Below, piece by piece: positions 10,429 through 40,000 of a stretch of DNA of 64,000 bases; within the stretch, counting starts at the first letter, position 1, and every line of letters starts with the position of its first letter. Both the position numbers and the translations under genes were made by a program. The DNA is from Amphiscolops sp. MND2022 (lineage: Eukaryota). The notes beneath the pieces were generated by a model. It had not been told where the DNA came from, searched no databases, and was given only the letters and a program-made list of their open reading frames with translations. Location: positions 74,338,001-74,402,000 of the forward strand of contig OZ076412.1 in assembly GCA_964187785.1 (NCBI GenBank). The letters are read 5' to 3'.

Positions 10429-10446
10429 TCTCTTTGATATCTCCTA

Positions 10447-11182: not shown

Positions 11183-11218
11183 AATTACCTATGCGCTGTA
11201 TTCCTTCTTCTGTCTCTC

Positions 11219-11758
11219 ATGAAGTTCAAACCACCCACCTTGCCATCAAATCCTTTCCTAGAGAAGTGGAAATGGTGGAAGCAATGTTTGAAGGACGGTT
11301 TACTTATCGACGGCTCATCCGAAGATGCTGACAAGTTAGTTTTCCTTCGTACATTTGTCAGCTGCGACTATTTCATCCGCCTTGTAAGTTCTGCAACGTT
11401 TGGACACGCACTGAGAACGTTGAACAGGCACTTTCTGAAGCCCGCGAGAGTGCCCTTCGCCCGTCATCAAATGCTCAGTGCCAGTCAGATGGACGACGAA
11501 TCCATCGTACAGTTTTCTGGAAGGCTGAAACGACTAGTTGAAGACTGCGAATGCACCAGTCTGAGCATCCAAGCACACAACGACTATCTAGTACGAGACG
11601 CCCTAATATCAGGGTTCAGGTCTGACGATGTTCGGGCAAGACTATTGGAGCTGGAAGACTCTAAGGCCAACATCGATAGTTGCATCTCGCTTGCGTGTGC
11701 AATCGACCTATCCAGTGACTTTCGAAACCTTTTCGAAGCGATGAATTTTCAACTGTAG
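11219..11758 (+). pseudogene. gypsy gag remnant
   Basis: WKWWKQCLKDGL, QMDDESIVQFSGRLKRLVEDC, LVRDALISG; premature end. Confidence 0.8.
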
Positions 11759-11972
11759 CTGCGGCAAAGCCGTTCTCTCAGACAACCCGGCGACAACTTG
11801 ATCGACCTGGCACCCCGCTGCCCAACAGGTTGCGAACAAGCTTCGTCCGCGCTGTCAGGTCTTCGTTCTAAAACAGCACCCATAATCAAAGTGCCCAGAC
11901 AAAAAGGACACTTGTCACAAATGCTCCGAAGCAGGACACTGGGCGTCGGTATGTAGATCGACCGCTGTCGTC

Positions 11973-14253: not shown

Positions 14254-14275
14254 AGACTTTCGAGGCGGGAAGGAG

Positions 14276-14427
14276 TGTTTTGAATGTAATATATATGTAG
14301 TTATCAATACAGGTATATAAATAATGTGGTTGTGTTATTTATGTTGGCCTACTTGTTGTATGTATGCTTCAGATGAATGCCCATCAAATAGAAACTTCCT
14401 ACAAGTAATGTTTTCCCTCACGAAATT
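14276..14427 (+). repeat. 3' LTR
   Basis: Directly follows the PPT and aligns to 10281-10428. Confidence 0.85.
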
Positions 14428-14677
14428 GCGTTTGAAAAAAATTGTTACATGTAGTTTTTGGTTTCTCAAACATGTATGGCATCGCGGTTTTTCAAAAAAA
14501 TGGTTTCTTCCACTCGACTGGGAGGCGACATTCAACCAAATAGAAAATTTTGATCGAAAATATTCATTGCGAATATTGTCGACTAGGAATTAGGTCGAAA
14601 TTGAAGGGGGGTATTTTTTCGGTCGACATGATTACGTCGAATGTTCAGAATTTTGCAAAGATGATCGAAAGTAAAAT

Positions 14678-14824
14678 GGGGGGTCATATACGGTGTATGC
14701 ACGCTCGCCTTCACCGTCGCAAAGACCAGCTCCCACTACGATCGCTTCGCGCTCCCCGTTCCCGCTAGGTCTTTGCTCCTGTTTGACCTCGCTTAGCAAG
14801 ATGGGATCATAAGCGGCCCCAAGG
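14678..14824 (-). repeat. GC-rich repeat of about 145 bp, inverted relative to 17324-17467
   Basis: Near-exact reverse complement of 17324-17467. Confidence 0.9.
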
Positions 14825-17130: not shown

Positions 17131-17323
17131 ATGTTCTTGTTTTTCGGGGCGGTGGGCGTTTGGATCGAATGAATTTGCGCGAAAATGCAATCTGTCACTG
17201 AGATCGAAGTAAAATGGTCAAAAAAATGAGATCGAATCCATGTTTTCAAATACCTAGCGTTTTCAAATAACAATGTTTTTGGTCGTCGGATATGCCCCCC
17301 ATTTCCTCTAATGCCACGCGGCC

Positions 17324-17467
17324 CCTTGGGGCCGCTTATGTTCCCATCTTGCTAAGCGAGGTCGAACAGGAGCAAAGACCTAGCGGGAACGGAGATCGCG
17401 AAGCGATCGTAGTGGGAGCTGGTCCTTGCGACGGTGAGGGCGAGCGTGCATACACCGGATATGCCCC
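17324..17467 (+). repeat. GC-rich repeat with hairpin GCGGCCCC-TT-GGGGCCGC at its left edge (also at about 23692 and 30086)
   Basis: Reverse complement of 14678-14824; perfect 8-bp stem. Confidence 0.85.
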
Positions 17468-17844
17468 ACATATCATACGAAACGTTTCGTCAAATTATTT
17501 TAGCCTGAGACGTTTCGGCATTTTTTTTGCCGAAACGTCCGACGCCATGTTTTTGCCGAAACGTTCGGAATCCGACTGGGATAGTGGCTGGTATCAGTAG
17601 TTTGTTGGTTGTATTTTCTTGTTGCTACTTGTCTGTTGGGATAGTGGCTTGCACGGGGTTTCTTCTTTCGTTGCAGACCATGGTTGAGTGTCTTTTCCCA
17701 TCATCATGACTTACATGGCAATTAATTGTTGACGATGATTCATGATATCTCGGTGGTTTAATCTGTAGTCATATTCATAAATAACTATTAGTGCGGTTAT
17801 CGTTGATAAAGAAGTTATGGCGTTATTTTTCGTGAATTTTTCCG

Positions 17845-17953
17845 TCTTTTCAATGGCTCTTCAGATCGGCAATGCGGCCTATGTTCTAGGAACTGTGAGC
17901 GACAGAGATGCGTTCGAAGAAATTTTTTACATATAGCTTATATTAAAAAAAAA
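17845..17953 (+). mobile_element. 3' tip of the CRE-type LINE with poly(A) (also about 24213-24321 and 30607-30715)
   Basis: Matches 10222-10280; reads VLGTVSDRDAFEEIFYI-stop followed by an A-run. Confidence 0.75.
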
Positions 17954-19356
17954 CCTTTATATCATTGCAGCTTTAAAAAAAATTTCTACCGGTCGACTGC
18001 GATAGTGGCTGGTATGAGTTGTTTGTTGGTTGTTTCTTTTTGCTACTGGGATAGTCGCTGGTATGGGGTTCCCTACTCTCGTTGCAGACCACGGGTGTGT
18101 GTCTCCCCCCCCCCCCCAACATGGTGATGCACATGGCACTTGATTGATGACGAAGATCCATGATATCTGATAGAGGAAAAAAATTTCCGTCTTCGTAGAA
18201 TGATTCTTACTATATGGTGACTTTCCATAGCTCTGAATATTCATTGCTCCGAAATCAAAATCGAGTGTCATAAATTTTAATTATCTGCTTCGATTCTGAA
18301 TCGCAGTCCAAATGTTCTAATTTAAATAAAGGCGCTCCCGCAAATTCTTAACCTAAAATCACTGCGGCAACTAAAGGCATTGACAGTTCGGGGAATATGC
18401 AAAACAAACAACTTGTCAATATTTCGTCAACTTACGCGAATTTTAGGTGTGAAAATAATGTTGGAAATTCCGGAGCTATGGCAGTAGATTTTAAATTCGG
18501 AGCTAAGAATAGTCACCTTACTATATATCTGAGTACATTCTCAGGCTTATGAAGCGCGAGCTTCGTTCAAGAGGAGAGCAGGAATAACCAAAGCCAAGCC
18601 ATGCGCAGGCTTATTTCCAATCTTAATACGTTGGATTTCTTCAGACGTTATTCCCGAAACACTTTTAGACATTAACTTGAATTTAGTTTCTGTCGAAATG
18701 AAATTTGTTGTTTAACAATTGCAGGATGCTTTTGAGGAGAGCCATATACCCATAAAAAGTTTCAAGATTTTAATATTTAATGGGATAGGTTATCGAAGAA
18801 ATGGTGATGGTTTCTTTCAAAACTTCGCGTTCATACTTCGCGAACATAGTTTCATACCTCTTCGTCTCTTGTCAATCTTTTCGCACCAGTTATCAACGAA
18901 CTGTGAAGATAAATCCTGCACTAAACGGTGTCTACTGTGTTCTCTATCGTCAGGAACATACGCATTTGAAGCAGGTGCTTTTTTCGGCACTCTTCATCTC
19001 GGGTTCCTAAAGAGTTTCCAGTGGTCACTTGTATAGCTACTGCTGATGCGCCTGGAAAACCCGCTCCAGCAGACCTTATTCCCGAACTTTTCGTGACCCA
19101 CATCTTCCAATGGTTTTAATGTCGCTCAAATCAGGAAAAGGATTTATTCTGAATTGAAAAAATACGGCACTCATTTGCTATATACTTGTCTCGAGGCTTC
19201 CGTTAAGCGGGCTCACACCTTGAGAAGTCTTTTCTGAACATAGATATGTTACATGATGAATGAATTTTATTTTCTGTGTTATCGAAGTACGGATGAATTC
19301 AATTATTATATATAAAATCTAACTGTTGACTTACCCACAGTGACTTTGTTTTTCAG

Positions 19357-19776
19357 ATGATGGGTCCCGTTCCCATAGGTGGGTATCTTCCCACCATCAA
19401 CTGAAAGTAAGTTGCTTTGCATGTCTAAAAGTCCTGCTCCCTATTAGCAATGAATGCATAGGATAATTTCGATGGTTTAGATTATGAGCCTTGGATCATC
19501 AAGAAACTTTCCAAATTCAGCCATCAACGGCCCGGCAGCGCATTCTATAAATTCATCACAGTTTGGATCACACACATTCAATACTCAATATACGAACTCG
19601 AACCCGATGTCATTCGTCAATAATAGCGCTCAAGCAAACAATGGACATCTGTTTCCCCCAGGGGTAAGTGGTTCAGATTGTGCACATTAATTTTCATTCT
19701 ACTTCTTCATCTCATCAAAATTTTTCCGTTTCAGAACGCAACCTTCTCCCATATGTATAATCAAGCTCGAGATATG
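19357..19776 (+). other. Three-exon cassette, copy 1 (19357-19406, 19481-19663, 19735-19776); host gene unassigned
   Basis: TTTCAG/TTTAG acceptors, GTAAGT/GTAAGT/GTGAGT donors, introns of 74 and 71 nt. The spliced frame is open: DGSRSHRWVSSHHQLK-IMSLGSSRNF...LFPPG-NATFSHMYNQARDM. Confidence 0.7.
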
Positions 19777-19926
19777 GTGAGTCCATTTGTCTGCATTCAA
19801 TCGATCCATTTTCTTTAACATCTCAACATTGAAAAGTAAACGTCTTTCCATGTAATCAGGTTTCGACATAGCTTGTTTTTCACTTTTTGTAGCTGTTCTG
19901 ATTGGCTGAATTCCCGAAACTATTTA

Positions 19927-20100
19927 CAGTGGAATCCGCCTAATTCGTATCGCCAGGGACCGAATAAAATACTACGAATAACGAGAAATACCAATTAACA
20001 GGATGATTTTACTTTGGTCGTCCTGAAATGGGGGTCTCAAAGACGTACGAATTAAACGAAGATCCGAATTATCCGGATACGAATTAACCGGAGTTGACTG
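19927..20100. mobile_element. Tc1/mariner-type MITE, 174 bp (also 26293-26466 and 32685-32858)
   Basis: TA|CAGT...ACTG|TA ends with imperfect TIRs of about 25 bp (..TAATTCGTATC). Confidence 0.85.
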
Positions 20101-20662
20101 TATAATGTAGCTGTTGTGTCTTGAAAAGGGGCGCAGACGACAAGTTCAAGATTTTTGTGAATTAGCTGTTTACCGAATCAGCTGAGCGGAGAGCTTTTTT
20201 TCAGCGATGTTCAAGAGCTCACCAAACAATAGCTTGTTTCCAGAAAATTGTTTCAGCTAAACTGTGGTGGTGTGTAAGGAGAGACCATGTAAATTATCCC
20301 AAAAGCCATCAGAAATATTCCAAAAATATGTTATAACTCCATCCATAAACGACACACTTTTTGGTGGCCAGTCTTGTACCCTCAATACAAAAAACTATTT
20401 TTGGTTGGAAATCAATTATTGGAACCAACAAACTTACACCTGATTAGCAATTGCGAAATAAGTGGTTGATATCAGCGATGTCACAACTCTGGTATCAAAT
20501 AGTTAATTATTTACGGGCTATCGGTCGATCGTGGTATCGAAATTCAGCATGCACAATTGCGTGAACTCTACGCGAAAAGTCCAGTATTATTTGGATTCAA
20601 AATGATTTTGACCTTTTCATTGGCGCTCTGCTCTGCGTTTATAGAATTTCAAGTTACATATT

Positions 20663-22068
20663 TAGTAGTAGTAGTAGTAGTAGTAGTAGTAGAATAGACT
20701 TCAGGGCGTAGCCCTAGGAGGTTTCCACCTTTGATTGTCCGAGTTCTAATTCACCCGCAGTTTTTCAAAGATGTTGCAGTTTCCACATCTGCATAGGAGT
20801 CTCCATGTACATGTGTTTGTCTCATTGTTTTTCTTTCGAAAGAAGGTGTGGTGGATGTCAGTCAGTGTCGTTTTGTCAGGTTTTTGGTGGAAAGAGGGAC
20901 ATGCGCAGATAAGGTAGCTGTAGTCTTTTTGTGCGGGTGAAGAATTTGTCTTTTGGAGTCGAGCCTGGGCTAATGGTAGCTCTCCTCTTCGAAATTGCCT
21001 GGTTGAATCATATGCATGTGGTAAGGTTTCATTAAGTACTACGTCATACTTGTCATTGAGCATAGCCAGTAACATCAGGATGTCGTGCATTTCCATATAG
21101 AGACTGAGGGGGAGGAGCTTCAGTACTTTCATTCTTTGGTAATAGCTTTTTTCTGGTCCAAGATCCAACGAGTCGCCAAATTTTGAACTTTCTCTAGTGT
21201 TGCAGAGTTTGCTTTGTTTGCTTTGCCATGTCTGGAGGCATAGGTTAGTACGGGTCCTATGTCGCTTATTTGAAAAAAATTGACTTCGCATTGCTTTGGT
21301 TGCATGTCCGTTACTGTTTCCGTTCCAGGGAAAGTTGTTGCTGATCATGACTCCCAGGCCGCGTTGACTTTGAACAGTTGAGAGGGGCTTATTCAACAGG
21401 GTAGCGTTTTGTTCTCGCAGATTGAGAAGTGTCGAGATTTCTTGACTTTGGGCATCATTTTGTTTGCTTCCCACCAATTTTCTATATTTGTTGAATAATC
21501 CAGCTGACTTCGCTCTTTGGTAATGACTTTGAAATCATCTGCATAGCTAAAGCTATCAACTTCATTTAGTGATTCAGGGCGATCGTTTATGAACAGTAGG
21601 ACGAGGAGAGGACCCAATATAGACCCCTGCTGGACCTCCTAACCGCTTTTGGAGTAGTTACGCTCCTGTTGTCCTCGCTACGAACGTAATGTTTTCTATC
21701 AGTCAGGTGCAATTTTATATGGAAAACAGCTTTCCACCAAATCTATTTTTTTGGATCAGGATGTCTTGGGGGAGGGGTTGTATCGAAGGCTTTGGCAAAA
21801 TCGAGATATGAAACATCTAGCTGGTCTGTTTCTACCTTGTCATATAGAGTTCATATAATCGGTGTTTGAAAACTAACAATTGGACAGTCGCCTGTTTGCG
21901 GAAGCCAAATTGACTCGTGTAGTCTATCTCTGACATGCTTGTATATATCGTCGAATTTAACTTCTTCCAGTATTTTACAGCAGCAGGATTGTAAACTGAT
22001 GGATCTGTAGCAACTTACGTCATCCTTGTTGCCTTCTCTGAATATTGGTGTCACTTTACAGATTTTCG
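20663..22068 (-). mobile_element. LINE B (CR1/L2-group-like) 3' part with (CTA)10 tail, cut by the junction
   Basis: KVTPIFREG..YRSISL, GVQQGSILGPLL-like, YADDFK; (TAG)n at 20663-20692. Confidence 0.85.
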
Positions 22069-22081
22069 AAAATTGATCGGA

Positions 22082-23498
22082 TTGATGAAACCATATAGTC
22101 ATACAGTACGTTACACCTGGTTTCACATATGAATCAAAAATACGTACAGCGTAAAATGGATTTAATCCTTGCGTTATGAGTATACTAGTTTCTTTCCAGT
22201 AATTAACCACCGAGGCAGAGATAATGGCAGCATGTGTTTTGAAACTCAAATCTCGCAAAAACCATAGGCCCAGTCTTTTATTTCTCTCAACAAATTTATA
22301 GTCGGACTGAAATGCTTCTTTTGAGAAATTTATTTGTTCAGTTTTGTCTTTATTCAGCACCTGCCTCCATTTGTATGTTTAGTTTTCCGCCTTTTCTAAA
22401 TATGTGCTTAAGTTTTCTTTGCTTGAAAGAGAAGTACTGTCAACTGCATACATATATGTTAAGTCCGCATCTTGGAGCAAGCCCTTCATATAAAATATAA
22501 ACAAAAGTGGTGACAGTACAGCTCCCTGAGGTAAACCATAAAGAGGGACAAATGACATGTTGATAAAATCATTGACTTGGATACTGACTTTCTGATTCGA
22601 TAAAAAAGATTTTATAGTAGCTAACATTGGACCATTTAAACCACTGTTTATAAGCTTGCTTATCAATAAAGTTTGATCTACGGAATCAAAAGCTTTCTCT
22701 AGATCATATACTGTTGCGATTGGTAAATTTTTCATTGCTAAGATATCATGATATAATTTGTATAAGTAGTGCAAAGTTGACTTGCCTGGCTGAAAATCAA
22801 ATTGTTGCTCATCAATGTCGAGGATATCTGATGATCTTAGTCTTCTATCTATCTCTCGTTCATCTACTTTTCCTAAATGGGATGTAAGTGAAATAGGTCT
22901 ATATGAAGATGGATTAGAATAATCAGTTTTGCCAGACTTTTTCAAGAATTTGACAATGGTTTTATCAAATGGCCAATTCCCCATGAAGAATGCACTGTTT
23001 ATCAAGTGCAAACATATCCTAATGGTGTTAAATTTGAATTTCTTTAATAGTTTAGGATGAAGGCCATAAGGTTCTACGCCCTTGTTGTTTGTCTTGATTT
23101 TCGTTATGGCTTGTTTAAGTTCATCCATTGTATTACGCATGTTTAGATCATTCTTGACCTACTCCTTGTAATAATCTCCAACGGTGTGAGCCAACTTCTC
23201 TTTCACTTCTACTTTTACTTGTTCATAAAAAGTGTCGTCAAATAGTTTACCAGTAAGGTGTGCACCATCGAAGAAAATACGTTGAAAGAGCGCAGCTTTA
23301 TGGCAATCCTTTTCTAGTGTCCTACCCTTGTGACAAAGTACTCCTATGTTATTTATGTCCATTGAACCATTGAATTTGCGGAGATTATCGAAAAATGTTT
23401 AAGCGTTTCCCTTATTCATTTCCATGATGCCATTTTGCGTCCAACGGGTATTGTTCTTTTTCATTTCCTTTTTGAATTCGATTTTAGCCATTTCAACA
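22082..23498 (-). mobile_element. LINE A, 3'-truncated copy
   Basis: Same ORFs as 15714-17130. Confidence 0.85.
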
Positions 23499-25722
23499 AT
23501 GTTCTTGTTTTTCGGGGCGGTGGGCGTTTGGATCGAATGAATTTGCGCGAAAATGCAATCTGTCACTGAGATCGAAGTAAAATGGTCAAAAAAATGAGAT
23601 CGAATCCATGTTTTCAAATACCTAGCGTTTTCAAATAACAATGTTTTTGGTCGTCGGATATGCCCCCCATTTCCTCTAATGCCACGCGGCCCCTTGGGGC
23701 CGCTTATGTTCCCATCTTGCTAAGCGAGGTCGAACAGGAGCAAAGACCTAGCGGGAACGGAGATCGCGAAGCGATCGTAGTGGGAGCTGGTCCTTGCGAC
23801 GGTGAGGGCGAGCGTGCATACACCGGATATGCCCCACATATCATACGAAACGTTTCGTCAAATTATTTTAGCCTGAGACGTTTCGGCATTTTTTTTGCCG
23901 AAACGTCCGACGCCATGTTTTTGCCGAAACGTTCGGAATCCGACTGGGATAGTGGCTGGTATCAGTAGTTTGTTGGTTGTATTTTCTTGTTGCTACTTGT
24001 CTGTTGGGATAGTGGCTTGCACGGGGTTTCTTCTTTCGTTGCAGACCATGGTTGAGTGTCTTTTCCCATCATCATGACTTACATGGCAATTAATTGTTGA
24101 CGATGATTCATGATATCTCGGTGGTTTAATCTGTAGTCATATTCATAAATAACTATTAGTGCGGTTATCGTTGATAAAGAAGTTATGGCGTTATTTTTCG
24201 TGAATTTTTCCGTCTTTTCAATGGCTCTTCAGATCGGCAATGCGGCCTATGTTCTAGGAACTGTGAGCGACAGAGATGCGTTCGAAGAAATTTTTTACAT
24301 ATAGCTTATATTAAAAAAAAACCTTTATATCATTGCAGCTTTAAAAAAAATTTCTACCGGTCGACTGCGATAGTGGCTGGTATGAGTTGTTTGTTGGTTG
24401 TTTCTTTTTGCTACTGGGATAGTCGCTGGTATGGGGTTCCCTACTCTCGTTGCAGACCACGGGTGTGTGTCTCCCCCCCCCCCAACATGGTGATGCACAT
24501 GGCACTTGATTGATGACGAAGATCCATGATATCTGATAGAGGAAAAAAATTTCCGTCTTCGTAGAATGATTCTTACTATATGGTGACTTTCCATAGCTCT
24601 GAATATTCATTGCTCCGAAATCAAAATCGAGTGTCATAAATTTTAATTATCTGCTTCGATTCTGAATCGCAGTCCAAATGTTCTAATTTAAATAAAGGCG
24701 CTCCCGCAAATTCTTAACCTAAAATCACTGCGGCAGCTAAAGGCATTGACAGTTCGGGGAATATGCAAAACAAACAACTTGTCAATATTTCGTCAACTTA
24801 CGCGAATTTTAGGTGTGAAAATAATGTTGGAAATTCCGGAGCTATGGCAGTAGATTTTAAATTCGGAGCTAAGAATAGTCACCTTACTATATATCTGAGT
24901 ACATTCTCAGGCTTATGAAGCGCGAGCTTCGTTCAAGAGGAGAGCAGGAATAACCAAAGCCAAGCAATGCGCAGGCTTATTTCCAATCTTAATACGTTGG
25001 ATTTCTTCAGACGTTATTCCCGAAACACTTTTAGACATTAACTTGAATTTAGTTTCTGTCGAAATGAAATTTGTTGTTTAACAATTGCAGGATGCTTTTG
25101 AGGAGAGCCATATACCCATAAAAAGTTTCAAGATTTTAATATTTAATGGGATAGGTTATCGAAGAAATGGTGATGGTTTCTTTCAAAACTTCGCGTTCAT
25201 ACTTCGCGAACATAGTTTCATACCTCTTCGTCTCTTGTCAATCTTTTCGCACCAGTTATCAACGAACTGTGAAGATAAATCCTGCACTAAACGGTGTCTA
25301 CTGTGTTCTCTATCGTCAGGAACATACGCATTTGAAGCAGGTGCTTTTTTCGGCACTCTTCATCTCGGGTTCCTAAAGAGTTTCCAGTGGTCACTTGTAT
25401 AGCTACTGCTGATGCGCCTGGAAAACCCGCTCCAGCAGACCTTATTCCCGAACTTTTCGTGACCCACATCTTCCAATGGTTTTAATGTCGCTCAAATCAG
25501 GAAAAGGATTTATTCTGAATTGAAAAAATACGGCACTCATTTGCTATATACTTGTCTCGAGGCTTCCGTTAAGCGGGCTCACACCTTGAGAAGTCTTTTC
25601 TGAACATAGATATGTTACATGATGAATGAATTTTATTTTCTGTGTTATCGAAGTACGGATGAATTCAATTATTATATATAAAATCTAACTGTTGACTTAC
25701 CCACAGTGACTTTGTTTTTCAG

Positions 25723-26142
25723 ATGATGGGTCCCGTTCCCATAGGTGGGTATCTTCCCACCATCAACTGAAAGTAAGTTGCTTTGCATGTCTAAAAGTCC
25801 TGCTCCCTATTAGCAATGAATGCATAGGATAATTTCGATGGTTTAGATTATGAGCCTTGGATCATCAAGAAACTTTCCAAATTCAGCCATCAACGGCCCG
25901 GCAGCGCATTCTATAAATTCATCACAGTTTGGATCACACACATTCAATACTCAATATACGAACTCGAACCCGATGTCATTCGTCAATAATAGCGCTCAAG
26001 CAAACAATGGACATCTGTTTCCCCCAGGGGTAAGTGGTTCAGATTGTGCACATTAATTTTCATTCTACTTCTTCATCTCATCAAAATTTTTCCGTTTCAG
26101 AACGCAACCTTCTCCCATATGTATAATCAAGCTCGAGATATG
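25723..26142 (+). other. Three-exon cassette, copy 2
   Basis: Same exons and splice sites as copy 1. Confidence 0.7.
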
Positions 26143-27028
26143 GTGAGTCCATTTGTCTGCATTCAATCGATCCATTTTCTTTAACATCTCAACATTGAAA
26201 AGTAAACGTCTTTCCATGTAATCAGGTTTCGACATAGCTTGTTTTTCACTTTTTGTAGCTGTTCTGATTGGCTGAATTCCCGAAACTATTTACAGTGGAA
26301 TCCGCCTAATTCGTATCGCCAGGGACCGAATAAAATACTACGAATAACGAGAAATACCAATTAACAGGATGATTTTACTTTGGTCGTCCTGAAATGGGGG
26401 TCTCAAAGACGTACGAATTAAACGAAGATCCGAATTATCCGGATACGAATTAACCGGAGTTGACTGTATAATGTAGCTGTTGTGTCTTGAAAAGGGGCGC
26501 AGACGACAAGTTCAAGATTTTTGTGAATTAGCTGTTTACCGAATCAGCTGAGCGGAGAGCTTTTTTTCAGCGATGTTCAAGAGCTCACCAAACAATAGCT
26601 TGTTTCCAGAAAATTGTTTCAGCTAAACTGTGGTGGTGTGTAAGGAGAGACCATGTAAATTATCCCAAAAGCCATCAGAAATATTCCAAAAATATGTTAT
26701 AACTCCATCCATAAACGACACACTTTTTGGTGGCCAGTCTTGTACCCTCAATACAAAAAACTATTTTTGGTTGGAAATCAATTATTGGAACCAACAAACT
26801 TACACCTGATTAGCAATTGCGAAATAAGTGGTTGATATCAGCGATGTCACAACTCTGGTATCAAATAGTTAATTATTTACGGGCTATCGGTCGATCGTGG
26901 TATCGAAATTCAGCATGCACAATTGCGTGAACTCTACGCGAAAAGTCCAGTATTATTTGGATTCAAAATGATTTTGACCTTTTCATTGGCGCTCTGCTCT
27001 GCGTTTATAGAATTTCAAGTTACATATT

Positions 27029-27088
<60 letters not shown>

Positions 27089-28463
27089 AATAGACTTCAG
27101 GGCGTAGCCCTAGGAGGTTTCCACCTTTGATTGTCCGAGTTCTAATTCACTCGCAGTTTTTCAAAGATGTTGCAGTTTCCACATCTGCATAGGAGTCTCC
27201 ATGTACATGTGTTTGTCTCATTGTTTTTCTTTCGAAAGAAGGTGTGGTGGATGTCGGTCAGTGTCGTTTTGTCAGGTTTTTGGTGGAAAGAGGGACATGC
27301 GCAGATAAGGTAGCTGTAGTCTTTTTGTGCGGGTGAAGAATTTGTCTTTTGGAGTCGAGCCTGGGCTAATGGTAGCTCTCCTCTTCGAAATTGCCTGGTT
27401 GAATCATATGCATGTGGTAAGGTTTCATTAAGTACTACGTCATACTTGTCATTGAGCATAGCCAGTAACATCAGGATGTCGTGCATTTCCATATAGAGAC
27501 TGAGGGGGAGGAGCTTCAGTACTTTCATTCTTTGGTAATAGCTTTTTTCTGGTCCAAGATCCAACGAGTCGCCAAATTTTGAACTTTCTCTAGTGTTGCA
27601 GAGTTTGCTTTGTTTGCTTTGCCATGTCTGGAGGCATAGGTTAGTACGGGTCCTATGTCGCTTATTTGAAAAAAATTGACTTCGCATTGCTTTGGTTGCA
27701 TGTCCGTTACTGTTTCCGTTCCAGGGAAAGTTGTTGCTGATCATGACTCCCAGGCCGCGTTGACTTTGAACAGTTGAGAGGGGCTTATTCAACAGGGTAG
27801 CGTTTTGTTCTCGCAGATTGAGAAGTGTCGAGATTTCTTGACTTTGGGCATCATTTTGTTTGCTTCCCACCAATTTTCTATATTTGTTGAATAATCCAGC
27901 TGACTTCGCTCTTTGGTAATGACTTTGAAATCATCTGCATAGCTAAAGCTATCAACTTCATTTAGTGATTCAGGGCGATCGTTTATGAACAGTAGGACGA
28001 GGAGAGGACCCAATATAGACCCCTGCTGGACCTCCTAACCGCTTTTGGAGTAGTTACGCTCCTGTTGTCCTCGCTACGAACGTAATGTTTTCTATCAGTC
28101 AGGTGCAATTTTATATGGAAAACAGCTTTCCACCAAATCTATTTTTTGGATCAGGATGTCTTGGGGGAGGGGTTGTATCGAAGGCTTTGGCAAAATCGAG
28201 ATATGAAACATCTAGCTGGTCTGTTTCTACCTTGTCATATAGAGTTCATATAATCGGTGATTGAAAACTAACAATTGGACAGTCGCCTGTTTGCGGAAGC
28301 CAAATTGACTCGTGTAGTCTATCTCTGACATGCTTGTATATATCGTCGAATATAACTTCTTCCAGTATTTTACAGCAGCAGGATTGTAAACTGATGGATC
28401 TGTAGCAACTTACGTCATCCTTGTTGCCTTCTCTGAATATTGGTGTCACTTTACAGATTTTCG
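27029..28463 (-). mobile_element. LINE B, copy 2, (CTA)20 tail
   Basis: As copy 1. Confidence 0.85.
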
Positions 28464-28476
28464 AAAATTGATCGGA

Positions 28477-29893
28477 TTGATGAAACCATATAGTCATACA
28501 GTACGTTACACCTGGTTTCACATATGAATCAAAAATACGTACAGCGTAAAATGGATTTAATCCTTGCGTTATGAGTATACTAGTTTCTTTCCAGTAATTA
28601 ACCACCGAGGCAGAGATAATGGCAGCATGTGTTTTGAAACTCAAATCTCGCAAAAACCATAGGCCCAGTCTTTTATTTCTCTCAACAAATTTATAGTCGG
28701 ACTGAAATGCTTCTTTTGAGAAATTTATTTGTTCAGTTTTGTCTTTATTCAGCACCTGCCTCCATTTGTATGTATAGTTTTCCGCCTTTTCTAAATATGT
28801 GCTTAAGTTTTCTTTGCTTGAAAGAGAAGTACTGTCAACTGCATACATATATGTTAAGTCCGCATCTTGGAGCAAGCCCTTCATATAAAATATAAACAAA
28901 AGTGGTGACAGTACAGCTCCCTGAGGTAAACCATAAAGAGGGACAAATGACATGTTGATAAAATCATTGACTTGGATACTGACTTTCTGATTCGATAAAA
29001 AAGATTTTATAGTAGCTAACATTGGACCATTTAAACCACTGTTTATAAGCTTGCTTATCAATAAAGTTTGATCTACGGAATCAAAAGCTTTCTCTAGATC
29101 ATATACTGTTGCGATTGGTGAATTTTTCATTGCTAAGATATCATGATATAATTTGTATAAGTAGTGCAAAGTTGACTTGCCTGGCTGAAAATCAAATTGT
29201 TGCTCATCAATGTCGAGGATATCTGATGATCTTAGTCTTCTATCTATCTCTCGTTCATCTACTTTTCCTAAATGGGATGTAAGTGAAATAGGTCTATATG
29301 AAGATGGATTAGAATAATCAGTTTTGCCAGACTTTTTCAAGAATTTGACAATGGTTTTATCAAATGGCCAATTCCCCATGAAGAATGCACTGTTTATCAA
29401 GTGCAAACATATCCTAATGGTGTTAAATTTGAATTTCTTTAATAGTTTAGGATGAAGGCCATAAGGTTCTACGCCCTTGTTGTTTGTCTTGATTTTCGTT
29501 ATGGCTTGTTTAAGTTCATCCATTGTATTACGCATGTTTAGATCATTCTTGACCTACTCCTTGTAATAATCTCCAACGGTGTGAGCCAACTTCTCTTTCA
29601 CTTCTACTTTTACTTGTTCATAAAAAGTGTCGTCAAACAGTTTACCAGTAAGGTGTGCACCATCGAAGAAAATACGTTGAAAGAGCGCAGCTTTATGGCA
29701 ATCCTTTTCTAGTGTCCTACCCTTGTGACAAAGTACTCCTATGTTATTTATGTCCATTGAACCATTGAATTTGCGGAGATTATCGAAAAATGTTTAAGCG
29801 TTTCCCTTATTCATTTCCATGATGCCATTTTGCGTCCAACGGGTATTGTTCTTTTTCATTTCCTTTTTGAATTCGATTTTAGCCATTTCAACA
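28477..29893 (-). mobile_element. LINE A, 3'-truncated copy
   Basis: Same sequence; one T/A change removes a stop codon. Confidence 0.85.
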
Positions 29894-32114
29894 ATGTTCT
29901 TGTTTTTCGGGGCGGTGGGCGTTTGGATCGAATGAATTTGCGCGAAAATGCAATCTGTCACTGAGATCGAAGTAAAATGGTCAAAAAATGAGATCGAATC
30001 CATGTTTTCAAATACCTAGCGTTTTCAAATAACAATTTTTTTGGTCGTCGGATATGCCCCCCATTTCCTCTAATGCCACGCGGCCCCTTGGGGCCGCTTA
30101 TGTTCCCATCTTGCTAAGCGAGGTCGAACAGGAGCAAAGACCTAGCGGGAACGGAGATCGCGAAGCGATCGTAGTGGGAGCTGGTCCTTGCGACGGTGAG
30201 GGCGAGCGTGCATACACCGGATATGCCCCACATATCATACGAAACGTTTCGTCAAATTATTTTAGCCTGAGACGTTTCGGCATTTTTTTTGCCGAAACGT
30301 CCGACGCCATGTTTTTGCCGAAACGTTCGGAATCCGACTGGGATAGTGGCTGGTATCAGTAGTTTGTTGGTTGTATTTTCTTGTTGCTACTTGTCTGTTG
30401 GGATAGTGGCTTGCACGGGGTTTCTTCTTTCGTTGCAGACCATGGTTGAGTGTCTTTTCCCATCATCATGACTTACATGGCAATTAATTGTTGACGATGA
30501 TTCATGATATCTCGGTGGTTTAATCTGTAGTCATATTCATAAATAACTATTAGTGCGGTTATCGTTGATAAAGAAGTTATGGCGTTATTTTTCGTGAATT
30601 TTTCCGTCTTTTCAATGGCTCTTCAGATCGGCAATGCGGCCTATGTTCTAGGAACTGTGAGCGACAGAGATGCGTTCGAAGAAATTTTTTACATATAGCT
30701 TATATTAAAAAAAACCTTTATATCATTGCAGCTTTAAAAAAAATTTCTACCGGTCGACTGCGATAGTGGCTGGTATGAGTTGTTTGTTGGTTGTTTCTTT
30801 TTGCTACTGGGATAGTCGCTGGTATGGGGTTCCCTACTCTCGTTGCAGACCACGGGTGTGTCTCCCCCCCCCCCCAACATGGTGATGCACATGGCACTTG
30901 ATTGATGACGAAGATCCATGATATCTGATAGAGGAAAAAAATTTCCGTCTTCGTTGAATGATTCTTACTATATGGTGACTTTCCATAGCTCTGAATATTC
31001 ATTGCTCCGAAATCAAAATCGAGTGTCATAAATTTTAATTATCTGCTTCGATTCTGAATCGCAGTCCAAATGTTCTAATTTAAATAAAGGCGCTCCCGCA
31101 AATTCTTAACCTAAAATCACTGCAGCAACTAAAGGCATTGACAGTTCGGGGAATATGCAAAACAAACAACTTGTCAATATTTCGTCAACTTACGCGAATT
31201 TTAGGTGTGAAAATAATGTTGGAAATTCCGGAGCTATGGCAGTAGATTTTAAATTCGGAGCTAAGAATAGTCACCTTACTATATATCTGAGTACATTCTC
31301 AGGCTTATGAAGCGCGAGCTTCGTTCAAGAGGAGAGCAGGAATAACCAAAGCCAAGCCATGCGCAGGCTTATTTCCAATCTTAATACGTTGGATTTCTTC
31401 AGACGTTATTCCCGAAACACTTTTAGACATTAATTTGAATTTAGTTTCTGTCGAAATGAAATTTGTTGTTTAACAATTGCAGGATGCTTTTGAGGAGAGC
31501 CATATACCCATAAAAAGTTTCAAGATTTTAATATTTAATGGGATAGGTTATCGAAGAAATGGTGATGGTTTCTTTCAAAACTTCGCGTTCATACTTCGCG
31601 AACATAGTTTCATACCTCTTCGTCTCTTGTCAATCTTTTCGCACCAGTTATCAACGAACTGTGAAGATAAATCCTGCACTAAACGGTGTCTACTGTGTTC
31701 TCTATCGTCAGGAACATACGCATTTGAAGCAGGTGCTTTTTTCGGCACTCTTCATCTCGGGTTCCTAAAGAGTTTCCAGTGGTCACTTGTATAGCTACTG
31801 CTGATGCGCCTGGAAAACCCGCTCCAGCAGACCTTATTCCCGAACTTTTCGTGACCCACATCTTCCAATGGTTTTAATGTCGCTCAAATCAGGAAAAGGA
31901 TTTATTCTGAATTGAAAAAATACGGCACTCATTTGCTATATACTTGTCTCGAGGCTTCCGTTAAGCGGGCTCACACCTTGAGAAGTCTTTTCTGAACATA
32001 GATATGTTACATGATGAATGAATTTTATTTTCTGTGTTATCGAAGTACGGATGAATTCAATTATTATATATAAAATCTAACTGTTGACTTACCCACAGTG
32101 ACTTTGTTTTTCAG

Positions 32115-32534
32115 ATGATGGGTCCCGTTCCCATAGGTGGGTATCTTCCCACCATCAACTGAAAGTAAGTTGCTTTGCATGTCTAAAAGTCCTGCTCCCT
32201 ATTAGCAATGAATGCATAGGATAATTTCGATGGTTTAGATTATGAGCCTTGGATCATCAAGAAACTTTCCAAATTCAGCCATCAACGGCCCGGCAGCGCA
32301 TTCTATAAATTCATCACAGTTTGGATCACACACATTCAATACTCAATATACGAACTCGAACCCGATGTCATTCGTCAATAATAGCGCTCAAGCAAACAAT
32401 GGACATCTGTTTCCCCCAGGGGTAAGTGGTTCAGATTGTGCACATTAATTTTCATTCTACTTCTTCATCTCATCAAAATTTTTCCGTTTCAGAACGCAAC
32501 CTTCTCCCATATGTATAATCAAGCTCGAGATATG
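32115..32534 (+). other. Three-exon cassette, copy 3
   Basis: Same exons and splice sites as copy 1. Confidence 0.7.
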
Positions 32535-33420
32535 GTGAGTCCATTTGTCTGCATTCAATCGATCCATTTTCTTTAACATCTCAACATTGAAAAGTAAACG
32601 TCTTTCCATGTAATCAGGTTTCGACATAGCTTGTTTTTCACTTTTTGTAGCTGTTCTGATTGGCTGAATTCCCGAAACTATTTACAGTGGAATCCGCCTA
32701 ATTCGTATCGCCAGGGACCGAATAAAATACTACGAATATCGAGAAATACCAATTAACAGGATGATTTTACTTTGGTCGTCCTGAAATGGGGGTCTCAAAG
32801 ACGTACGAATTAAACGAAGATCCGAATTATCCGGATACGAATTAACCGGAGTTGACTGTATAATGTAGCTGTTGTGTCTTGAAAAGGGGCGCAGACGACA
32901 AGTTCAAGATTTTTGTGAATTAGCTGTTTACCGAATCAGCTGAGCGGAGAGCTTTTTTTCAGCGATGTTCAAGAGCTCACCAAACAATAGCTTGTTTCCA
33001 GAAAATTGTTTCAGCTAAACTGTGGTGGTGTGTAAGGAGAGACCATGTAAATTATCCCAAAAGCCATCAGAAATATTCCAAAAATATGTTATAACTCCAT
33101 CCATAAACGACACACTTTTTGGTGGCCAGTCTTGTACCCTCAATACAAAAAACTATTTTTGGTTGGAAATCAATTATTGGAACCAACAAACTTACACCTG
33201 ATTAGCAATTGCGAAATAAGTGGTTGATATCAGCGATGTCACAACTCTGGTATCAAATAGTTAATTATTTACGGGCTATCGGTCGATCGTGGTATCGAAA
33301 TTCAGCATGCACAATTTCGTGAACTCTACGCGAAAAGTCCAGTATTATTTGGATTCAAAATGATTTTGACCTTTTCATTGGCGCTCTGCTCTGCGTTTAT
33401 AGAATTTCAAGTTACATATT

Positions 33421-33462
<42 letters not shown>

Positions 33463-35590
33463 AATAGACTTCAGGGCGTAGCCCTAGGAGGTTTCCACCT
33501 TTGATTGTCCGAGTTCTAATTCACTCGCAGTTTTTCAAAGATGTTGCAGTTTCCACATCTGCATAGGAGTCTCCATGTACATGTGTTTGTCTCATTGTTT
33601 TTCTTTCGAAAGAAGGTGTGGTGGATGTCGGTCAGTGTCGTTTTGTCAGGTTTTTGGTGGAAAGAGGGACATGCGCAGATAAGGTAGCTGTAGTCTTTTT
33701 GTGCGGGTGAAGAATTTGTCTTTTGGAGTCGAGCCTGGGCTAATGGTAGCTCTCCTCTTCGAAATTGCCTGGTTGAATCATATGCATGTGGTAAGGTTTC
33801 ATTAAGTACTACGTCATACTTGTCATTGAGCATAGCCAGTAACATCAGGATGTCGTGCATTTCCATATAGAGACTGAGGGGGAGGAGCTTCAGTACTTTC
33901 ATTCTTTGGTAATAGCTTTTTTCTGGTCCAAGATCCAACGAGTCGCCAAATTTTGAACTTTCTCTAGTGTTGCAGAGTTTGCTTTGTTTGCTTTGCCATG
34001 TCTGGAGGCATAGGTTAGTACGGGTCCTATGTCGCTTATTTGAAAAAAATTGACTTCGCATTGCTTTGGTTGCATGTCCGTTACTGTTTCCGTTCCAGGG
34101 AAAGTTGTTGCTGATCATGACTCCCAGGCCGCGTTGACTTTGAACAGTTGAGAGGGGCTTATTCAACAGGGTAGCGTTTTGTTCTCGCAGATTGAGAAGT
34201 GTCGAGATTTCTTGACTTTGGGCATCATTTTGTTTGCTTCCCACCAATTTTCTATATTTGTTGAATAATCCAGCTGACTTCGCTCTTTGGTAATGACTTT
34301 GAAATCATCTGCATAGCTAAAGCTATCAACTTCATTTAGTGATTCAGGGCGATCGTTTATGAACAGTAGGACGAGGAGAGGACCCAATATAGACCCCTGC
34401 TGGACCTCCTAACCGCTTTTGGAGTAGTTACGCTCCTGTTGTCCTCGCTACGAACGTAATGTTTTCTATCAGTCAGGTGCAATTTTATATGGAAAACAGC
34501 TTTCCACCAAATCTATTTTTTGGATCAGGATGTCTTGGGGGAGGGGTTGTATCGAAGGCTTTGGCAAAATCGAGATATGAAACATCTAGCTGGTCTGTTT
34601 CTACCTTGTCATATAGAGTTCATATAATCGGTGATTGAAAACTAACAATTGGACAGTCGCCTGTTTGCGGAAGCCAAATTGACTCGTGTAGTCTATCTCT
34701 GACATGCTTGTATATATCGTCGAATATAACTTCTTCCAGTATTTTACAGCAGCAGGATTGTAAACTGATGGATCTGTAGCAACTTGCGTCATCCTTGTTG
34801 CCTTCTCTGAATATTGGTGTCACTTTACAGATTTTCGGTCTTTGGAAAAGAGCCTTTGTTGAAACAGGTTTGGAAGATGAGAGTTAATGATTTCCTGAGA
34901 GTACTATGGCGTTTCTTTAGGACAAGATTTCCGATTTTTTTGTGACCCATGGGTTTGTTCACATGTAGATGCTCCGTGATGTCATTTTATTTTGATTCAC
35001 TTTGAGTTCGTTTAGAGGTCCGGGTTCAGTGGTACTGTCAAGTTTCATTTCATTTTTGCCAAACACTGACAATGTAATCGTTGAAAAGTTCGCTTTTTCC
35101 ATCACTATTGGTTGAGACATTCGAGCCGTTTCTCACAGTAGGCAGGATAATTGGTGCTTTGCGAACACGTTTGAGATACTTTTGAATTCGACTGAAAAGT
35201 CTTGCTTTGAAAACCTTGGTTTCGAATTGGGATAGATCTTCTTCAGACGCTTCCAAGATTTCTTTTTCCATTTTTTTATCTTCAAGACCCGCTTCAAGTT
35301 TTGGTTTGGTTTCTTTTCGATTGATTCCACTTGTTGAGATGGGGCGTGGGGCTTGTAATCCAGTGTGGCAGCTTCTTTCTGTGTTCGGTTACTCTAGGAA
35401 TATATGCTCCTGGTACCAATAAAAATTTTTGAAAGACATACCGGATTCCGTTGTTCGTTGGGTTCGCGTCGCCTTTCAAAATCAGTGGTCAAGATACCAT
35501 GTTAGCAGAGATCTAAGATTCTTGAGTTCTGGTGGAACGCAATAGTGTTGTTTAACCATACCTGGGGCCACATAACTGACCTGCCATTCA
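33421..35590 (-). mobile_element. LINE B, copy 3, (CTA)14 tail, extending to an endonuclease remnant
   Basis: Continues past 34837 into linker ORFs (35050-35479; KSELFNDY, LPHWIT) and an RILDL remnant near 35520. The 5' end is approximate. Confidence 0.82.
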
Positions 35591-36598
35591 ATGTTTAATG
35601 AATTTTTCATTAGTTGGGTGTTTGGCTTTTATTCAGCTATCCTATCGCTAATTATCAGAAGCGACAGCTAGCTGTAGCAGAATTTTAATTTGAACAGTTG
35701 ATATTTTTTTTCAGTTTTTCTAATAGTTTTCCACATGATCTGCATGTAGAAAAGGCGGTCACTTGTCAGAAAATAGCGACACGTTTCGCCTTCAATGTCT
35801 AAAATTCATGAAAAAGTCACGGTATAAGTGTTTTGTTTACATGCTGATTTTGGGAACTCAGCAAAGCTATGTTTCCGAAATTAAAATTAACAGGGCGAAA
35901 TTGAATACGAACTTAAATATCTATCAAACCACTGCCTCCAATTTTTTGTAGTAAAGTAAAAACTACCATTTTTGTAGGCGCTTTCTAGGATCGACTTTTT
36001 TAGTATCTAGTTTTCTCGAGGTCCCAGACGTGCGCTGTATGTTCCATCCAAGAATGTAAATGATTTTTGATCCTCTCATCAGAAGTTGAAGTTTGGGACT
36101 AAGAATCTGGGGGGACAGAAATGTCTGTTTGATATCTGGGACCGAAATGTCCGGACACGGAATGTGATTTGAACTTCGTCAATGAGTTTTTTCATGCTTG
36201 AGTTTTATCACCATTAAAGATGTTTTATCACCATTACGTCAAATAGTCGTTTGTTTTTCATAATATATTTTATAAATTTTTCAACATTCACTTCGGTGAA
36301 CCACTAGGTTTGACTACCACTGATCCATTTTAAAACCGTATAAGGTTATGAAACTTATTATTTGCAAATTAGGTACACTTAATCTCTCATGAATATGATA
36401 TGCCTTTACATTTGCCGTTGATTGGTGACTCCCGGTTTAGTACCAGAATGCACAAATGTTATTACCAATTTACGTGCCCTCAATTAATGCTTATTTCGTC
36501 TTAAATTGCGTTTAGACGTGCACAAGGCTGGCTCGCCTAACTAATTACGTGAGAACTATGATGGTAATGAATGAAGTAAGCAGTGGCTGATAGGTTAA

Positions 36599-36607
36599 AA
36601 GATGGCG
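36599..36607 (+). promoter_or_regulatory. Candidate YY1-like initiator motif (AAGATGGCG) upstream of eIF4G
   Basis: Motif match only, about 270 nt before the ATG, in a locally CpG-containing stretch. Confidence 0.25.
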
Positions 36608-36877
36608 CAAATAGTCGCAGTTTAATGTTTGAGTTGTGGCGCGCTAATTATTGCGTCCGGATTAAGTTGTAACACGTTTCAGTATCATCTAACCAGACAT
36701 TTTTATCTGTTCACATCTTACTCATATTAGCTTCTAATCCAACTTAAGCTTTCTTACCAGCCACCATTTTGTTGGCATACATACAAATTTTACACTTGTT
36801 TCAATTGTGTAACTCGACTGAGAGTCAGTCGACTTAAGATTTATTGGTTAGGACTTGAAGTTGAAAGAAGTTATTTC

Positions 36878-37088
36878 ATGTCGTACAAGCAGAATTTCAT
36901 GGCGGGACAGACACCCCAGTTTACTCCCAACGTCGTGTGTCCCACTGCAGTGCAGCCCAATCTGAATGGATCTTACCCCACGCTCACCCAAGTGCCCCCC
37001 AATATGCAGAACCAAGCCAACATCGCCTACATGCGGACCGCACAGTTTCACCCGCAAGCCCATCATTTTTATGCAGGTCCTCATGCAG
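36878..37088 (+). CDS. EIF4G: eIF4G exon 1 (Q/P/N-rich N-terminus)
   Basis: [10 protein letters not shown]...HHFYAGPHA, ending at donor G|GTGAGA (phase 1), which matches the exon 2 acceptor phase. Confidence 0.75.
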
Positions 37089-40000
37089 GTGAGAACTGCA
37101 GAACCAATTCTCCATGGCCTTTTTGCATTTATTCTGTCCGACTTGTTCTTCGCAAAATCTCTGTAAGATCATAAGAAGTACACTCAACTCCGTTTATAAC
37201 GATATTCCGGTTATAGCGATCGAGTTTCACGGTCCCAGTCACGATGCTAGTATATAACTATTTTCGCCTATAACAATATTCGAATATATAGCGATTAAAA
37301 ACTTCGGTCCCCGGGCTATCGTTATAAGCGGAGTTGAGTGTAGTTTATAAAATACTGAGATAAGTGAAGACTGCAAATTGTGCAGTATGGTCTTCAACAT
37401 TTCAGTACATTTCGTCCTGTGCAATTGAAACGTTGCCTTTTCAACCGCTCACAATTTCAACCTATTGCATTTTCAACTTTCTGCAATTTCGACCTAAACT
37501 AATTTTGGCTAGTTGATCATGATTAGTTACATAATTATTTCATGTTTTTCCATTTTCATACATTCCTAAAACCAAATATGCTAACTTTTACGCCAGGTTT
37601 GATGTTTTGGCTTCTTCATGGATAATTACCATTAATTGAGTGTTTGATTCATTAGTAACTATTGTACTGAAATAATAACTCAAAACCGAATTAGGATTAA
37701 ATAGCCAAATTAGTTTAGGTTGAAGTTGCACGTTGAAATGGGAACGGCTAAAATTGTATAGGACGAAATGTCATGTAACCGCGCAGTATGGCCCAAAAGC
37801 TCAAATACACACTGACTCACGAATAAGCATAGTAGTTTTGTAAGGTTTGTTCTGCTTTGCTTGCCAAATGTGTGAAGACTGCTTTTTAGCCTTGATTCAT
37901 GTTGGACCTCAATTGTTTGATTTCAGCGCAATTTTTCATGCCGCCACATGGACCCATGCCCGGTCAGATTCCACCGCTGTATCATCTGCAGCCGCAGCAT
38001 CCTCACCACTTGAACATACGACCTCCCCATCCGAATACAAACGTGAACACAGGCGTGGGAGGACCAGCGCAGCCGTACGGTCATCACATGAACCATCATG
38101 GTCATCAGATGCAGGAGACGTCCAACTCCATCCACCAGATGAACTACAACCAGCCCGGCTACATGACGAACGCGCCCCCACCGCCCAACGTGACCGCCTC
38201 CAACGCACAGCCCAACTTCGTGCCCCCCACAAGCATGCATATGATGTCGGGCGGGTCCGCCGGTTCCGGAAATGCGGGGGCTGGTGGCTCAGTTAACGTG
38301 GATGCCAGTAGCAGCCAGCAGAATCACCAGTATTCGCGAAGTCAGAACGACCAGTCGGCTGCCCCTCCGGGCGCAGGAGTCAATGCCGGCGGGGCTCTGG
38401 GGTCCGAGGCAGGGGGTAACTCTGGAAGCAACTCTGGGCAGGCGTCATCCACAGCTAACACTGCTCCCAAACCAGTCCGAACAAAGATTGTTATCAGGGA
38501 TGCCACCACTCAGAAAGAGATCAACGTCGAAGAGTGGAAGAAGGGAGGCTCTTCATCTGCCGGTCCCAATGCTACTAACGTTAGACACTTCTCCATCTTT
38601 TTCTAAGCTTTTCCTTCATCTTTTTCTCTCCTTCACAAATTCTGAGGTTTTGAAAATATATATAAAAAAATAATGCATATCAAAAGCTCAAGGTGAAGTG
38701 ATAAAAATGTTGCATTTGCCCATGTTGAAGAGAGCGCTCGTCGCTAAAGTTTTTCAGGTGCCAACACGTTGCAAGCTGCAAAGCCTCCTTACAGTGTCAG
38801 TAACGGTCCCATTGAAATAAATTTTTCAACATTGGCAAGTTGAGGACAATTTATAAATTTGGTCGTCGTATCGAAATTTGATGGATAGTCAAAAATGGCT
38901 GGGCTAAGTGATTAGTTGCACCCGAAGGTTTGTCAACGTTAAGACAGCCCTCCCTCGCGGACTATGGCACTTATAGAGGCCTCTACCGTAGCTAGTTGAC
39001 AAAACCCATCAATCTCACAGTGTTGGAAATTACTCAAACAGGCTCCCTTGAGATTCGAAAACGCTTTTCACTAACTGAAAACATCAAAAACGGTCGATTT
39101 GGTGAAATCAAAAAAGCTCACAGTGCCGAAAAACTCAAAGGAGGGAAAGGACCCTTTGGCTTAGGCTCGCTTTGCAAACATGTGACAAGTTGTGACAACA
39201 AAAATATAGAAATTTATTGAATTATTTGCATAACATCAGTTCGAGTGAGGTCTTTAACAAATTCTAATGCGCGGACTAGAAAAATTTCAATTAGGTTTTA
39301 GAAACGAAAATGAAGTTTTTTACAACTTAGATCAGTGACTCCTGGATGTTTATTCGTTAATAAAGTTGACTTATGCCAGTACACATCCAAATTTACCTGG
39401 TTTCGTTTTTCCATGTTATGACCTTTTTTGATATCTCCAATCTTGTCAAAATTTGAGTGACGTAATCGTGTTTTGAAATGACGTCATCAAATATTTGAAT
39501 GATTCAATTGTACACAAATGATTGACAAAGTCAATGATGAATTATGTGGAGACTTCTCTGTCGAAATATCATTTGTCAAGTTTTGCTCATGTGTATACAA
39601 CCAACTATTCGTTAGTTTTTTTTTTAAATTTTACTTCACTTTTTTAGTTAGAGTGTGAATATAGGGCTCTATGAAAGGCATCCATAGCAAAAAGTTTTAG
39701 TGAATGTCAAAAATAGTTTTTCTTTATCACCTTGTTAGCGCATTTTTTTTGATGTTTTCGATGTGTTTCAGTCTAAAATTGGCGGTATCACAATACTGTA
39801 TTTTCCCCTAAATGTTATCGAGTTTCAAAAAACTTATAGATTAAAATATTTACCACACGTTTTTTGTAGCAAAATAGTTTCAATTGGAGTAATCCAGGGA
39901 TGTAAAAAATACATTTCAATGATCTTTTTGAAGTAATTATATTTGTTCAAACGAAAAATATTGGCCTATATTGTAAGTCGAAATTATATAATGTTCAAAG

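Follow-up and report, generated by a model that had tools for sequence, protein, structure and literature searches.

Where does the gene for the translation factor eIF4G begin in Amphiscolops sp. MND2022, and does a triplicated set of exons upstream of it build a longer protein? The window considered here, the whole 64,000-nucleotide (nt) stretch of DNA that was analyzed (contig OZ076412.1 of GenBank assembly GCA_964187785.1, forward-strand positions 74,338,001 to 74,402,000), contains three tandem units of about 6.4 kb, each of which carries a small cassette of three exons (A, B, and C), followed by the recognizable exons of eIF4G. A first-pass annotation of the sequence had placed the eIF4G start codon at position 36878 and had suggested that the cassettes are amplified upstream exons, which might give eIF4G a longer N terminus that varies with copy number. 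From comparison with a related animal, we consider it probable, taking the explanation as a whole, that exons A, B, and C are the authentic and conserved 5′ end of a single-copy eIF4G gene. The copies themselves are unlikely to lengthen the protein.

Exons A (50 nt), B (183 nt), and C (42 nt) are present in every unit with AG and GT at all borders, and the 461-nt span of the cassette, introns included, is letter-identical across the three units. The proximal cassette (copy 3, plus strand like the other two) comprises exon A at 32115 to 32164, exon B at 32239 to 32421, which encodes 60 N/S-rich residues from an ATG at 32242, and exon C at 32493 to 32534. Copy 1 (A, 19357 to 19406; B, 19481 to 19663; C, 19735 to 19776) and copy 2 (A, 25723 to 25772; B, 25847 to 26029; C, 26101 to 26142) are identical to it. 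Spliced together, the three exons measure 275 nt and leave 91 codons open in one frame. Exon B has 61 codons and exon C has 14, both are phase 0-0, and exon C terminates in GATATG/GTGAGT, so that the splice sites, open frame, and phases described in the first-pass annotation were confirmed in all three units. The cassette region occurs three times in the 1.07-Gb genome, always at this locus, and a dispersed repeat terminates about 40 nt upstream of exon A. The residues S, N, Q, G, P, and H make up 58% of the B and C product, compared with 57% of eIF4G exons 1 and 2; the 74 residues of B and C are 18% N, 5% Q, 16% S, and 4% charged, values that describe composition.

The gene downstream of the cassettes appears to be a bona fide eIF4G gene and the sole one of its type here, judging from its MIF4G matches, eIF4E-binding motif, partial MA3 match, and single-copy eIF4E-binding exon. 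Two open reading frames (ORFs) match MIF4G (PF02854), with E values of 2.8e-28 (47102 to 47455) and 7.8e-11 (45429 to 45896), and the exons of the MIF4G domain lie inside these frames (45429 to 47455, plus strand). Upstream of MIF4G, the plus-strand open frame at 44065 to 44805 contains the eIF4E-binding motif YDRDFLL (Y-x4-L-hydrophobic), which is kept in the copies of the relative; the exon encoding it is present once in the 1.07-Gb genome. An MA3 (PF02847) partial-exon match at 52375 to 52860 scored 22.9 bits against a cutoff of 23.2, and no W2 domain was detected in single ORFs. The best named relatives of the gene product are annotated as eIF4 gamma 1/3-like. Exon 1, as defined by homology (36893 to 37088, plus strand), lies behind a tandem AAG/CAG acceptor, opens with NFMAGQ, and finishes in phase 1. 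Exon 2 (37927 to 38571, with an approximate 3′ end, plus strand) is of low complexity and closes in an 11-residue stretch, which we take to resemble the human PABP-binding segment. This stretch is conserved in the relative. The N terminus of eIF4G holds the PABP-binding region (PMC5005323).

The evidence that ties the cassette to this gene comes from an ENA assembly of a related animal (sample ERZ26859043), which was found via exon 2, as this exon matched two ORFs on its contigs. Its exon 2 is 51 to 55% identical to exon 2 here by tblastn, and in a protein search the identities were 54% to protein P0156 and 50% to protein P0157. At one locus of the relative (L017), the last 17 nt of exon A with its donor, exon B, exon C, exon 1, and exon 2 follow one another on one strand within 1.3 kb: exon B lies at 9502 to 9681, exon C at 9746 to 9787 after a 64-nt intron, exon 1 at 9957 to 10119 after a 169-nt GT..AG intron, and exon 2 begins at 10179. 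A second locus (L016) has a partial exon B, exon C (15381 to 15422), and exon 1 in the same order. The relative has one cassette per exon 1. On this comparison of sequences, the linkage between the cassette and exon 1 predates the split of the two species.

Conservation of the cassette follows the predicted coding frame. The exon B protein is 75% identical in amino acids to L017:9502-9681 (E value of 3e-24), with the ATG at the same place, and nucleotide identity is 78.5% in exon B compared with 52 to 62% in the introns. The length of exon C (14 codons), its borders, and its GTGAGT donor are the same in L017 and L016. Exon B differs in length between the species, at 183 and 180 nt, by 3 nt, so that the frame is kept, and the remaining two frames of exon B contain stops in both species. 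For B and C together, the proportion of nonsynonymous differences (pN) is 0.157 and that of synonymous differences (pS) is 0.59, corresponding to an omega of approximately 0.15, which is a sign of purifying selection. With pN values of 0.20 for exon 1 and 0.22 for exon 2, B and C are at least as constrained as the established N-terminal exons. The cross-species identity, constraint, and preservation of frame together indicate that the cassette has been maintained as a coding region, read in the frame that was predicted.

How the cassette reaches exon 1 can be read from the same alignment. Exon C contains no stop and its GTGAGT donor is kept in both species, so it must splice onward, and the next conserved coding exon after it is exon 1, in matching phase. 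The relative's homology to exon 1 starts right at its acceptor (tttttttag/TCC CTC ATG), with an in-frame TAG directly before it. The corresponding position here is 36892/36893 (aagcag/AAT TTC ATG), in phase 0 with exon C and 15 nt inside exon 1 as drawn in the first-pass annotation. Because of the TAG in front of the relative's acceptor, the residues MSYKQ that would precede this position have no counterpart there. We favor 36893 as the ancestral acceptor on these sequence grounds. The intron between exon C and exon 1 would then run from 32535 to 36892 on the plus strand (4.36 kb, placed by homology) and would hold the end of the repeat unit together with transposon fragments.

The junction proposed previously was at 36760/36761, and from that acceptor 39 codons do run without a stop, in the frame of the ATG at 36878. 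The resulting bridge (36761 to 36892, plus strand) consists of the 39 open codons and ATG-TCG-TAC-AAG-CAG behind a textbook acceptor (CTAAT...CTTTCTTACCAG). Its frame is open already from 36731, over 49 codons, and since 4.5% of the 39-codon windows in the neighboring intron are open, the openness of the bridge is mildly unusual and not compelling. The 44 extra residues are not conserved in the relative, and S, N, Q, G, P, and H account for 20% of them versus 57 to 58% of the cassette and exons 1 and 2, a composition unlike that of eIF4G. Position 36761 may be a species-specific alternative acceptor, or the bridge a 5′ extension of exon 1. The idea that the cassettes are amplified upstream exons of eIF4G therefore stands on synteny, phases, and an omega of about 0.15, whereas its junction at 36761 gives way to the conserved one at 36893.

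The start codon is likely to lie in exon B. Codon 2 of exon B is an ATG (32242 in the proximal copy) that both species share, each with a purine at position −3, and in the relative a TAA lying 9 codons before the exon A donor closes the frame ahead of this ATG. From these features we infer that 32242 is the likely start and that exon A is a leader. Exon A has no ATG in the open frame of the cassette; its own ATGATG belongs to another frame, which stops inside exon A and forms an upstream open reading frame (uORF) of 15 codons (ATGATG...TGA) at 32115 to 32162, and likewise at 19357 to 19404 and 25723 to 25770. Exon A is probably 5′ untranslated region (UTR), as the first-pass annotation had allowed for the whole cassette. 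In the spliced RNA, 5 nt separate the end of this uORF from the eIF4G start codon proposed here, and the uORF may regulate eIF4G translation.

We therefore propose the following history and gene model. A 6.4-kb block holding the cassette exons would have been duplicated recently, and a third unit would then have been generated via unequal crossing-over. Exon A would serve as a leader with a short uORF, translation would start in exon B at 32242 of the proximal copy, and exon C would be spliced in phase 0 to exon 1 at 36893, which would place 74 N/S-rich residues before NFMAGQ. On this model, position 36878 would offer at most an alternative ATG start peculiar to this species. Only the proximal copy would keep the ancestral relation to exon 1, and we think that this copy probably works as before and that the two distal copies are probably redundant.

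Several observations weigh against this model. One related sample was found, which amounts to one independent comparison. Between L016 and L017, pN/pS is approximately 0.5 and introns and exons have diverged alike; both loci are duplicates that have been rearranged and in part fused to transposons, and their constraint is relaxed. One or both are therefore decaying, which weakens the claim that they are functional orthologs, although such decay leaves the constraint between the species intact and, if anything, underestimated. Of the two in-frame acceptors, 36761 has the stronger pyrimidine tract and 36893 the weaker, and exon A places two upstream ATGs ahead of the proposed start. Four sequencing runs from one sample were found for the locus, none of them recorded as RNA, so the junctions are drawn from homology. 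A promoter and first-exon search found no upstream block conserved between the window and L017. Finally, a second assembly of the same species shows a single unit, a point taken up below.

The relative also yielded a number of observations on its own eIF4G loci. At least five loci with eIF4G pieces (L012, L016, L017, L021, and L022) are 85 to 96% identical and differ in order, and one contig has approximately twice the coverage of the others (80x versus 32 to 41x). Directly before the eIF4E-binding exon, L016, L017, and L021 read NIIFD(N/K)LP where the genome here reads CWEDKTLA; NIIFDNLP looks like a motif of ORF1 of a long interspersed nuclear element (LINE). No 5′ exons were found in the 20 kb upstream in contig ctg88390 (L012, L014, and L015) or within 10 kb of L013, L021, and L022. 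More distant comparisons were without power: the N termini of the 150 best eIF4G representatives showed no similarity to the cassette, and none to exons 1 and 2 either. A search with exon B alone against 5.8 billion proteins gave no candidate, such short exons not being called as genes, and JGI metagenome contigs, scanned twice with alignments of exon 2 and exon B, yielded no hits.

The cassettes lie in three head-to-tail units, identified by self-BLAST and a repeat search of the window, that span 15714 to 34837. By self-comparison, unit 1 occupies 15714 to 22081, unit 2 occupies 22082 to 28476, and unit 3 occupies 28477 to 34837; each is 6.37 to 6.39 kb long, and they are 99.4 to 99.5% identical. 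The 64-kb window contains no N letters. The units differ by about 20 substitutions, a few indels of 1 to 2 bases, and the length of a (TAG)n run, and an identical 13-nt filler, AAAATTGATCGGA, lies at the joint of units 1 and 2 (22069 to 22081) and again at the joint of units 2 and 3 (28464 to 28476). The content of the units is largely transposon debris, with the cassette as the sole unique coding portion: each unit includes a minus-strand LINE reverse transcriptase ORF, fragments resembling short interspersed nuclear elements or miniature inverted-repeat transposable elements, and further dispersed repeats, and repeats make up most of the sequence ahead of exon A. Unit 2 is a mosaic: over its first 76% it agrees with unit 1 at 13 sites, and over its last 20% it agrees with unit 3 at 5 sites, the alleles switching near the (TAG)n run at 27029 to 27058. 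Its private features are two substitutions and the longest (TAG)n run. This pattern is a signature of unequal crossing-over between two older copies.

The alternative that survives best concerns the count and not the identity of the cassette. The threefold copy number could be an assembly error or the state of a single haplotype, with one or two units at the true locus, which we regard as a minor possibility and one compatible with the cassette being the 5′ end of eIF4G. It is raised by the second assembly of the species (ERZ25074608, ctg184673_94x; L020), which corresponds to window positions 11842 to 44792 and shows the left flank, one unit, and the right flank at 99.8 to 99.9% identity. Among the k-mer contigs listed, none bridges the joint at 28463 to 28477 and one departs there into unlike sequence; an ORF of 429 amino acids (aa) that spans this joint has no record in the collection searched, a negative that is uninformative. 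The single unit of L020, however, is itself a mosaic, with unit 1 alleles to approximately column 2630 and unit 3 alleles from column 2799, and so looks like a collapsed repeat. At each of the 12 clean variable sites, the Logan k-mer contigs from the four runs carry the allele found in two units out of three, a pattern that matches no single unit and not L020 either; these runs represent one sample and are perhaps the assembly's own data, and they are therefore not independent. Private alleles in each of the three units would need more than two haplotypes of a single-copy locus, and the 13-nt filler at both joints must derive from reads. Since L020 resembles a collapsed repeat, we lean toward a truly multicopy locus, with L020 probably a collapsed repeat and possibly a single-copy haplotype.

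A different alternative, which we judge improbable, is that the cassette became a relic after transposon insertions had stretched the intron between exon C and exon 1 and the block had been copied. The promoter would now lie just upstream of 36878, translation would start there or at the conserved Met at 36899, and the cassettes would be unused or nonproductive. In keeping with such a history, this 4.4-kb intron exceeds its 169-nt counterpart in the relative 26-fold, the acceptor at 36893 follows a poorer pyrimidine tract than the relative's acceptor does, and the in-frame ATG at 36878 is present here and not in the relative; human eIF4GI is known to use several initiation codons (Byrd, Zamora, and Lloyd 2002, PMC133909, as listed in PMC12709193). 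Decay of this kind is hard to reconcile with frames and all six splice sites that are intact in all three copies with zero changes, or with a constraint on B and C as strong as that on exons 1 and 2, and the context of the ATG at 36878 is poor, with T at −3.

Could the extra copies nonetheless contribute to the gene product? When exon C is joined to the exon A of the next unit, the junction reads MMGPVPIGGYLPTIN and a TGA stop follows after 15 codons, so multicassette transcripts that include the next exon A would give no extended eIF4G. They would contain long (89-codon) uORFs or a premature stop, or would be degraded. One could imagine that a single pre-mRNA with regulated skipping of exon A gives rise to isoforms with one to three modules, or that distal start exons act as 89-codon uORFs that throttle eIF4G, with copy number, which might differ from one individual to another, tuning the dose or the N terminus; we consider this highly improbable.

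Least probable of all, in our estimate, is plain chaining of the cassettes from exon C to the next exon B, with exon A skipped each time, so that eIF4G would contain a 75-residue N/S-rich module once, twice, or three times. Identity of the copies, their intact splice sites, the 0-0 phase of B and C, and an N/S-rich composition like that of the remaining N terminus would all permit it. In-frame chaining, however, needs the strong acceptor of exon A to be bypassed every time, inclusion of exon A leads to a stop 15 codons in, and the relative has one cassette per exon 1. Moreover, with the start codon in exon B, each further exon B would restart the same ORF and not extend it. The concatenated N terminus of variable length suggested by the first-pass annotation is thus unsupported and unlikely. 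The remaining suggestion, that the cassette belongs to a separate, truncated upstream gene, is rejected, since exon C has no stop, its donor is conserved, and all of the checked sequence upstream of the repeat is transposon.

Other features of the region deserve mention. In the intron after exon 2, a block of about 110 nt (39515 to 39625) is 82% identical to L012:3690-3811 of the relative. Its conservation exceeds that of most N-terminal coding exons, and every frame in it is interrupted by stops. Rfam gave no match to it, its folding is unremarkable (z scores of −1.1 and −2.1), and within it lie AATGATGAAT and a short inverted repeat. The block may be a regulatory element or an alternative exon. 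An Rfam search of the whole window gave no match.

Upstream of the repeat, positions 5500 to 14300 are occupied by transposons, including a family with dozens of copies at 75 to 80% identity (5500 to 10450) and a retroelement with an aspartyl protease ORF (11973 to 12350). A 149-nt element at 14676 to 14824, left of the repeat, is 94% identical and inverted relative to one element in each unit (17324 to 17471, 23692 to 23839, and 30086 to 30233); its k-mer depth, in the hundreds of thousands, marks it as a very abundant short repeat. At the joint of units 2 and 3, two distinct parts of LINE reverse transcriptase fragments are fused through the 13-nt filler into the 429-aa open frame mentioned above (28246 to 29535, minus strand), and the same fusion at the joint of units 1 and 2 yields separate frames of 169 and 253 aa.

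The arrangement has parallels in known systems. Human EIF4G1 (eIF4GI) reportedly produces N-terminal isoforms from several initiation codons and 5′ exons, according to work by Byrd, Zamora, and Lloyd in 2002. As in that gene, the coding start here would lie in small upstream exons, more than one in-frame start is possible, and a long disordered N terminus precedes the PABP- and eIF4E-binding sites. The upstream exons here differ in having been found by comparison with one related species and not from cDNA, in being triplicated, and in being without similarity to the 150 other eIF4G N termini. Young tandem segmental duplications that grow by unequal crossing-over are commonplace, and this locus resembles them in its head-to-tail order, 99.5% identity, recombinant middle copy, and copy number that differs between assemblies. 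It departs from typical examples in that the same 13-nt filler occurs at both joints, the breakpoints are not in homologous repeats, and the block holds the start-codon exon of an essential single-copy gene. The partial tandem duplication of KMT2A in human leukemia (KMT2A-PTD) is an intragenic, in-frame duplication of 5′ exons that is seen in RNA; as there, duplicated internal exons could be spliced serially into one transcript, but in the present locus the frame is broken once exon A takes part in serial splicing, and the duplication is known from DNA.

Overall, we view the locus modestly, as a corrected gene model plus a young structural variant. Nothing known is overturned; the practical value lies in the corrected model and in a locus where two assemblies disagree. 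The true eIF4G start is likely to lie 4.6 kb upstream of the ATG chosen by reading the sequence, and probably also by automatic annotation, and the corrected model would add 74 conserved residues to eIF4G. The locus would also be a natural instance of fresh triplication affecting the exon that carries the start codon of an essential, single-copy translation factor. Should the copy number prove both genuine and variable, the locus would offer a simple system for studying how repeated 5′ exons are tolerated, whether through promoter choice, exon skipping, or transcript decay.

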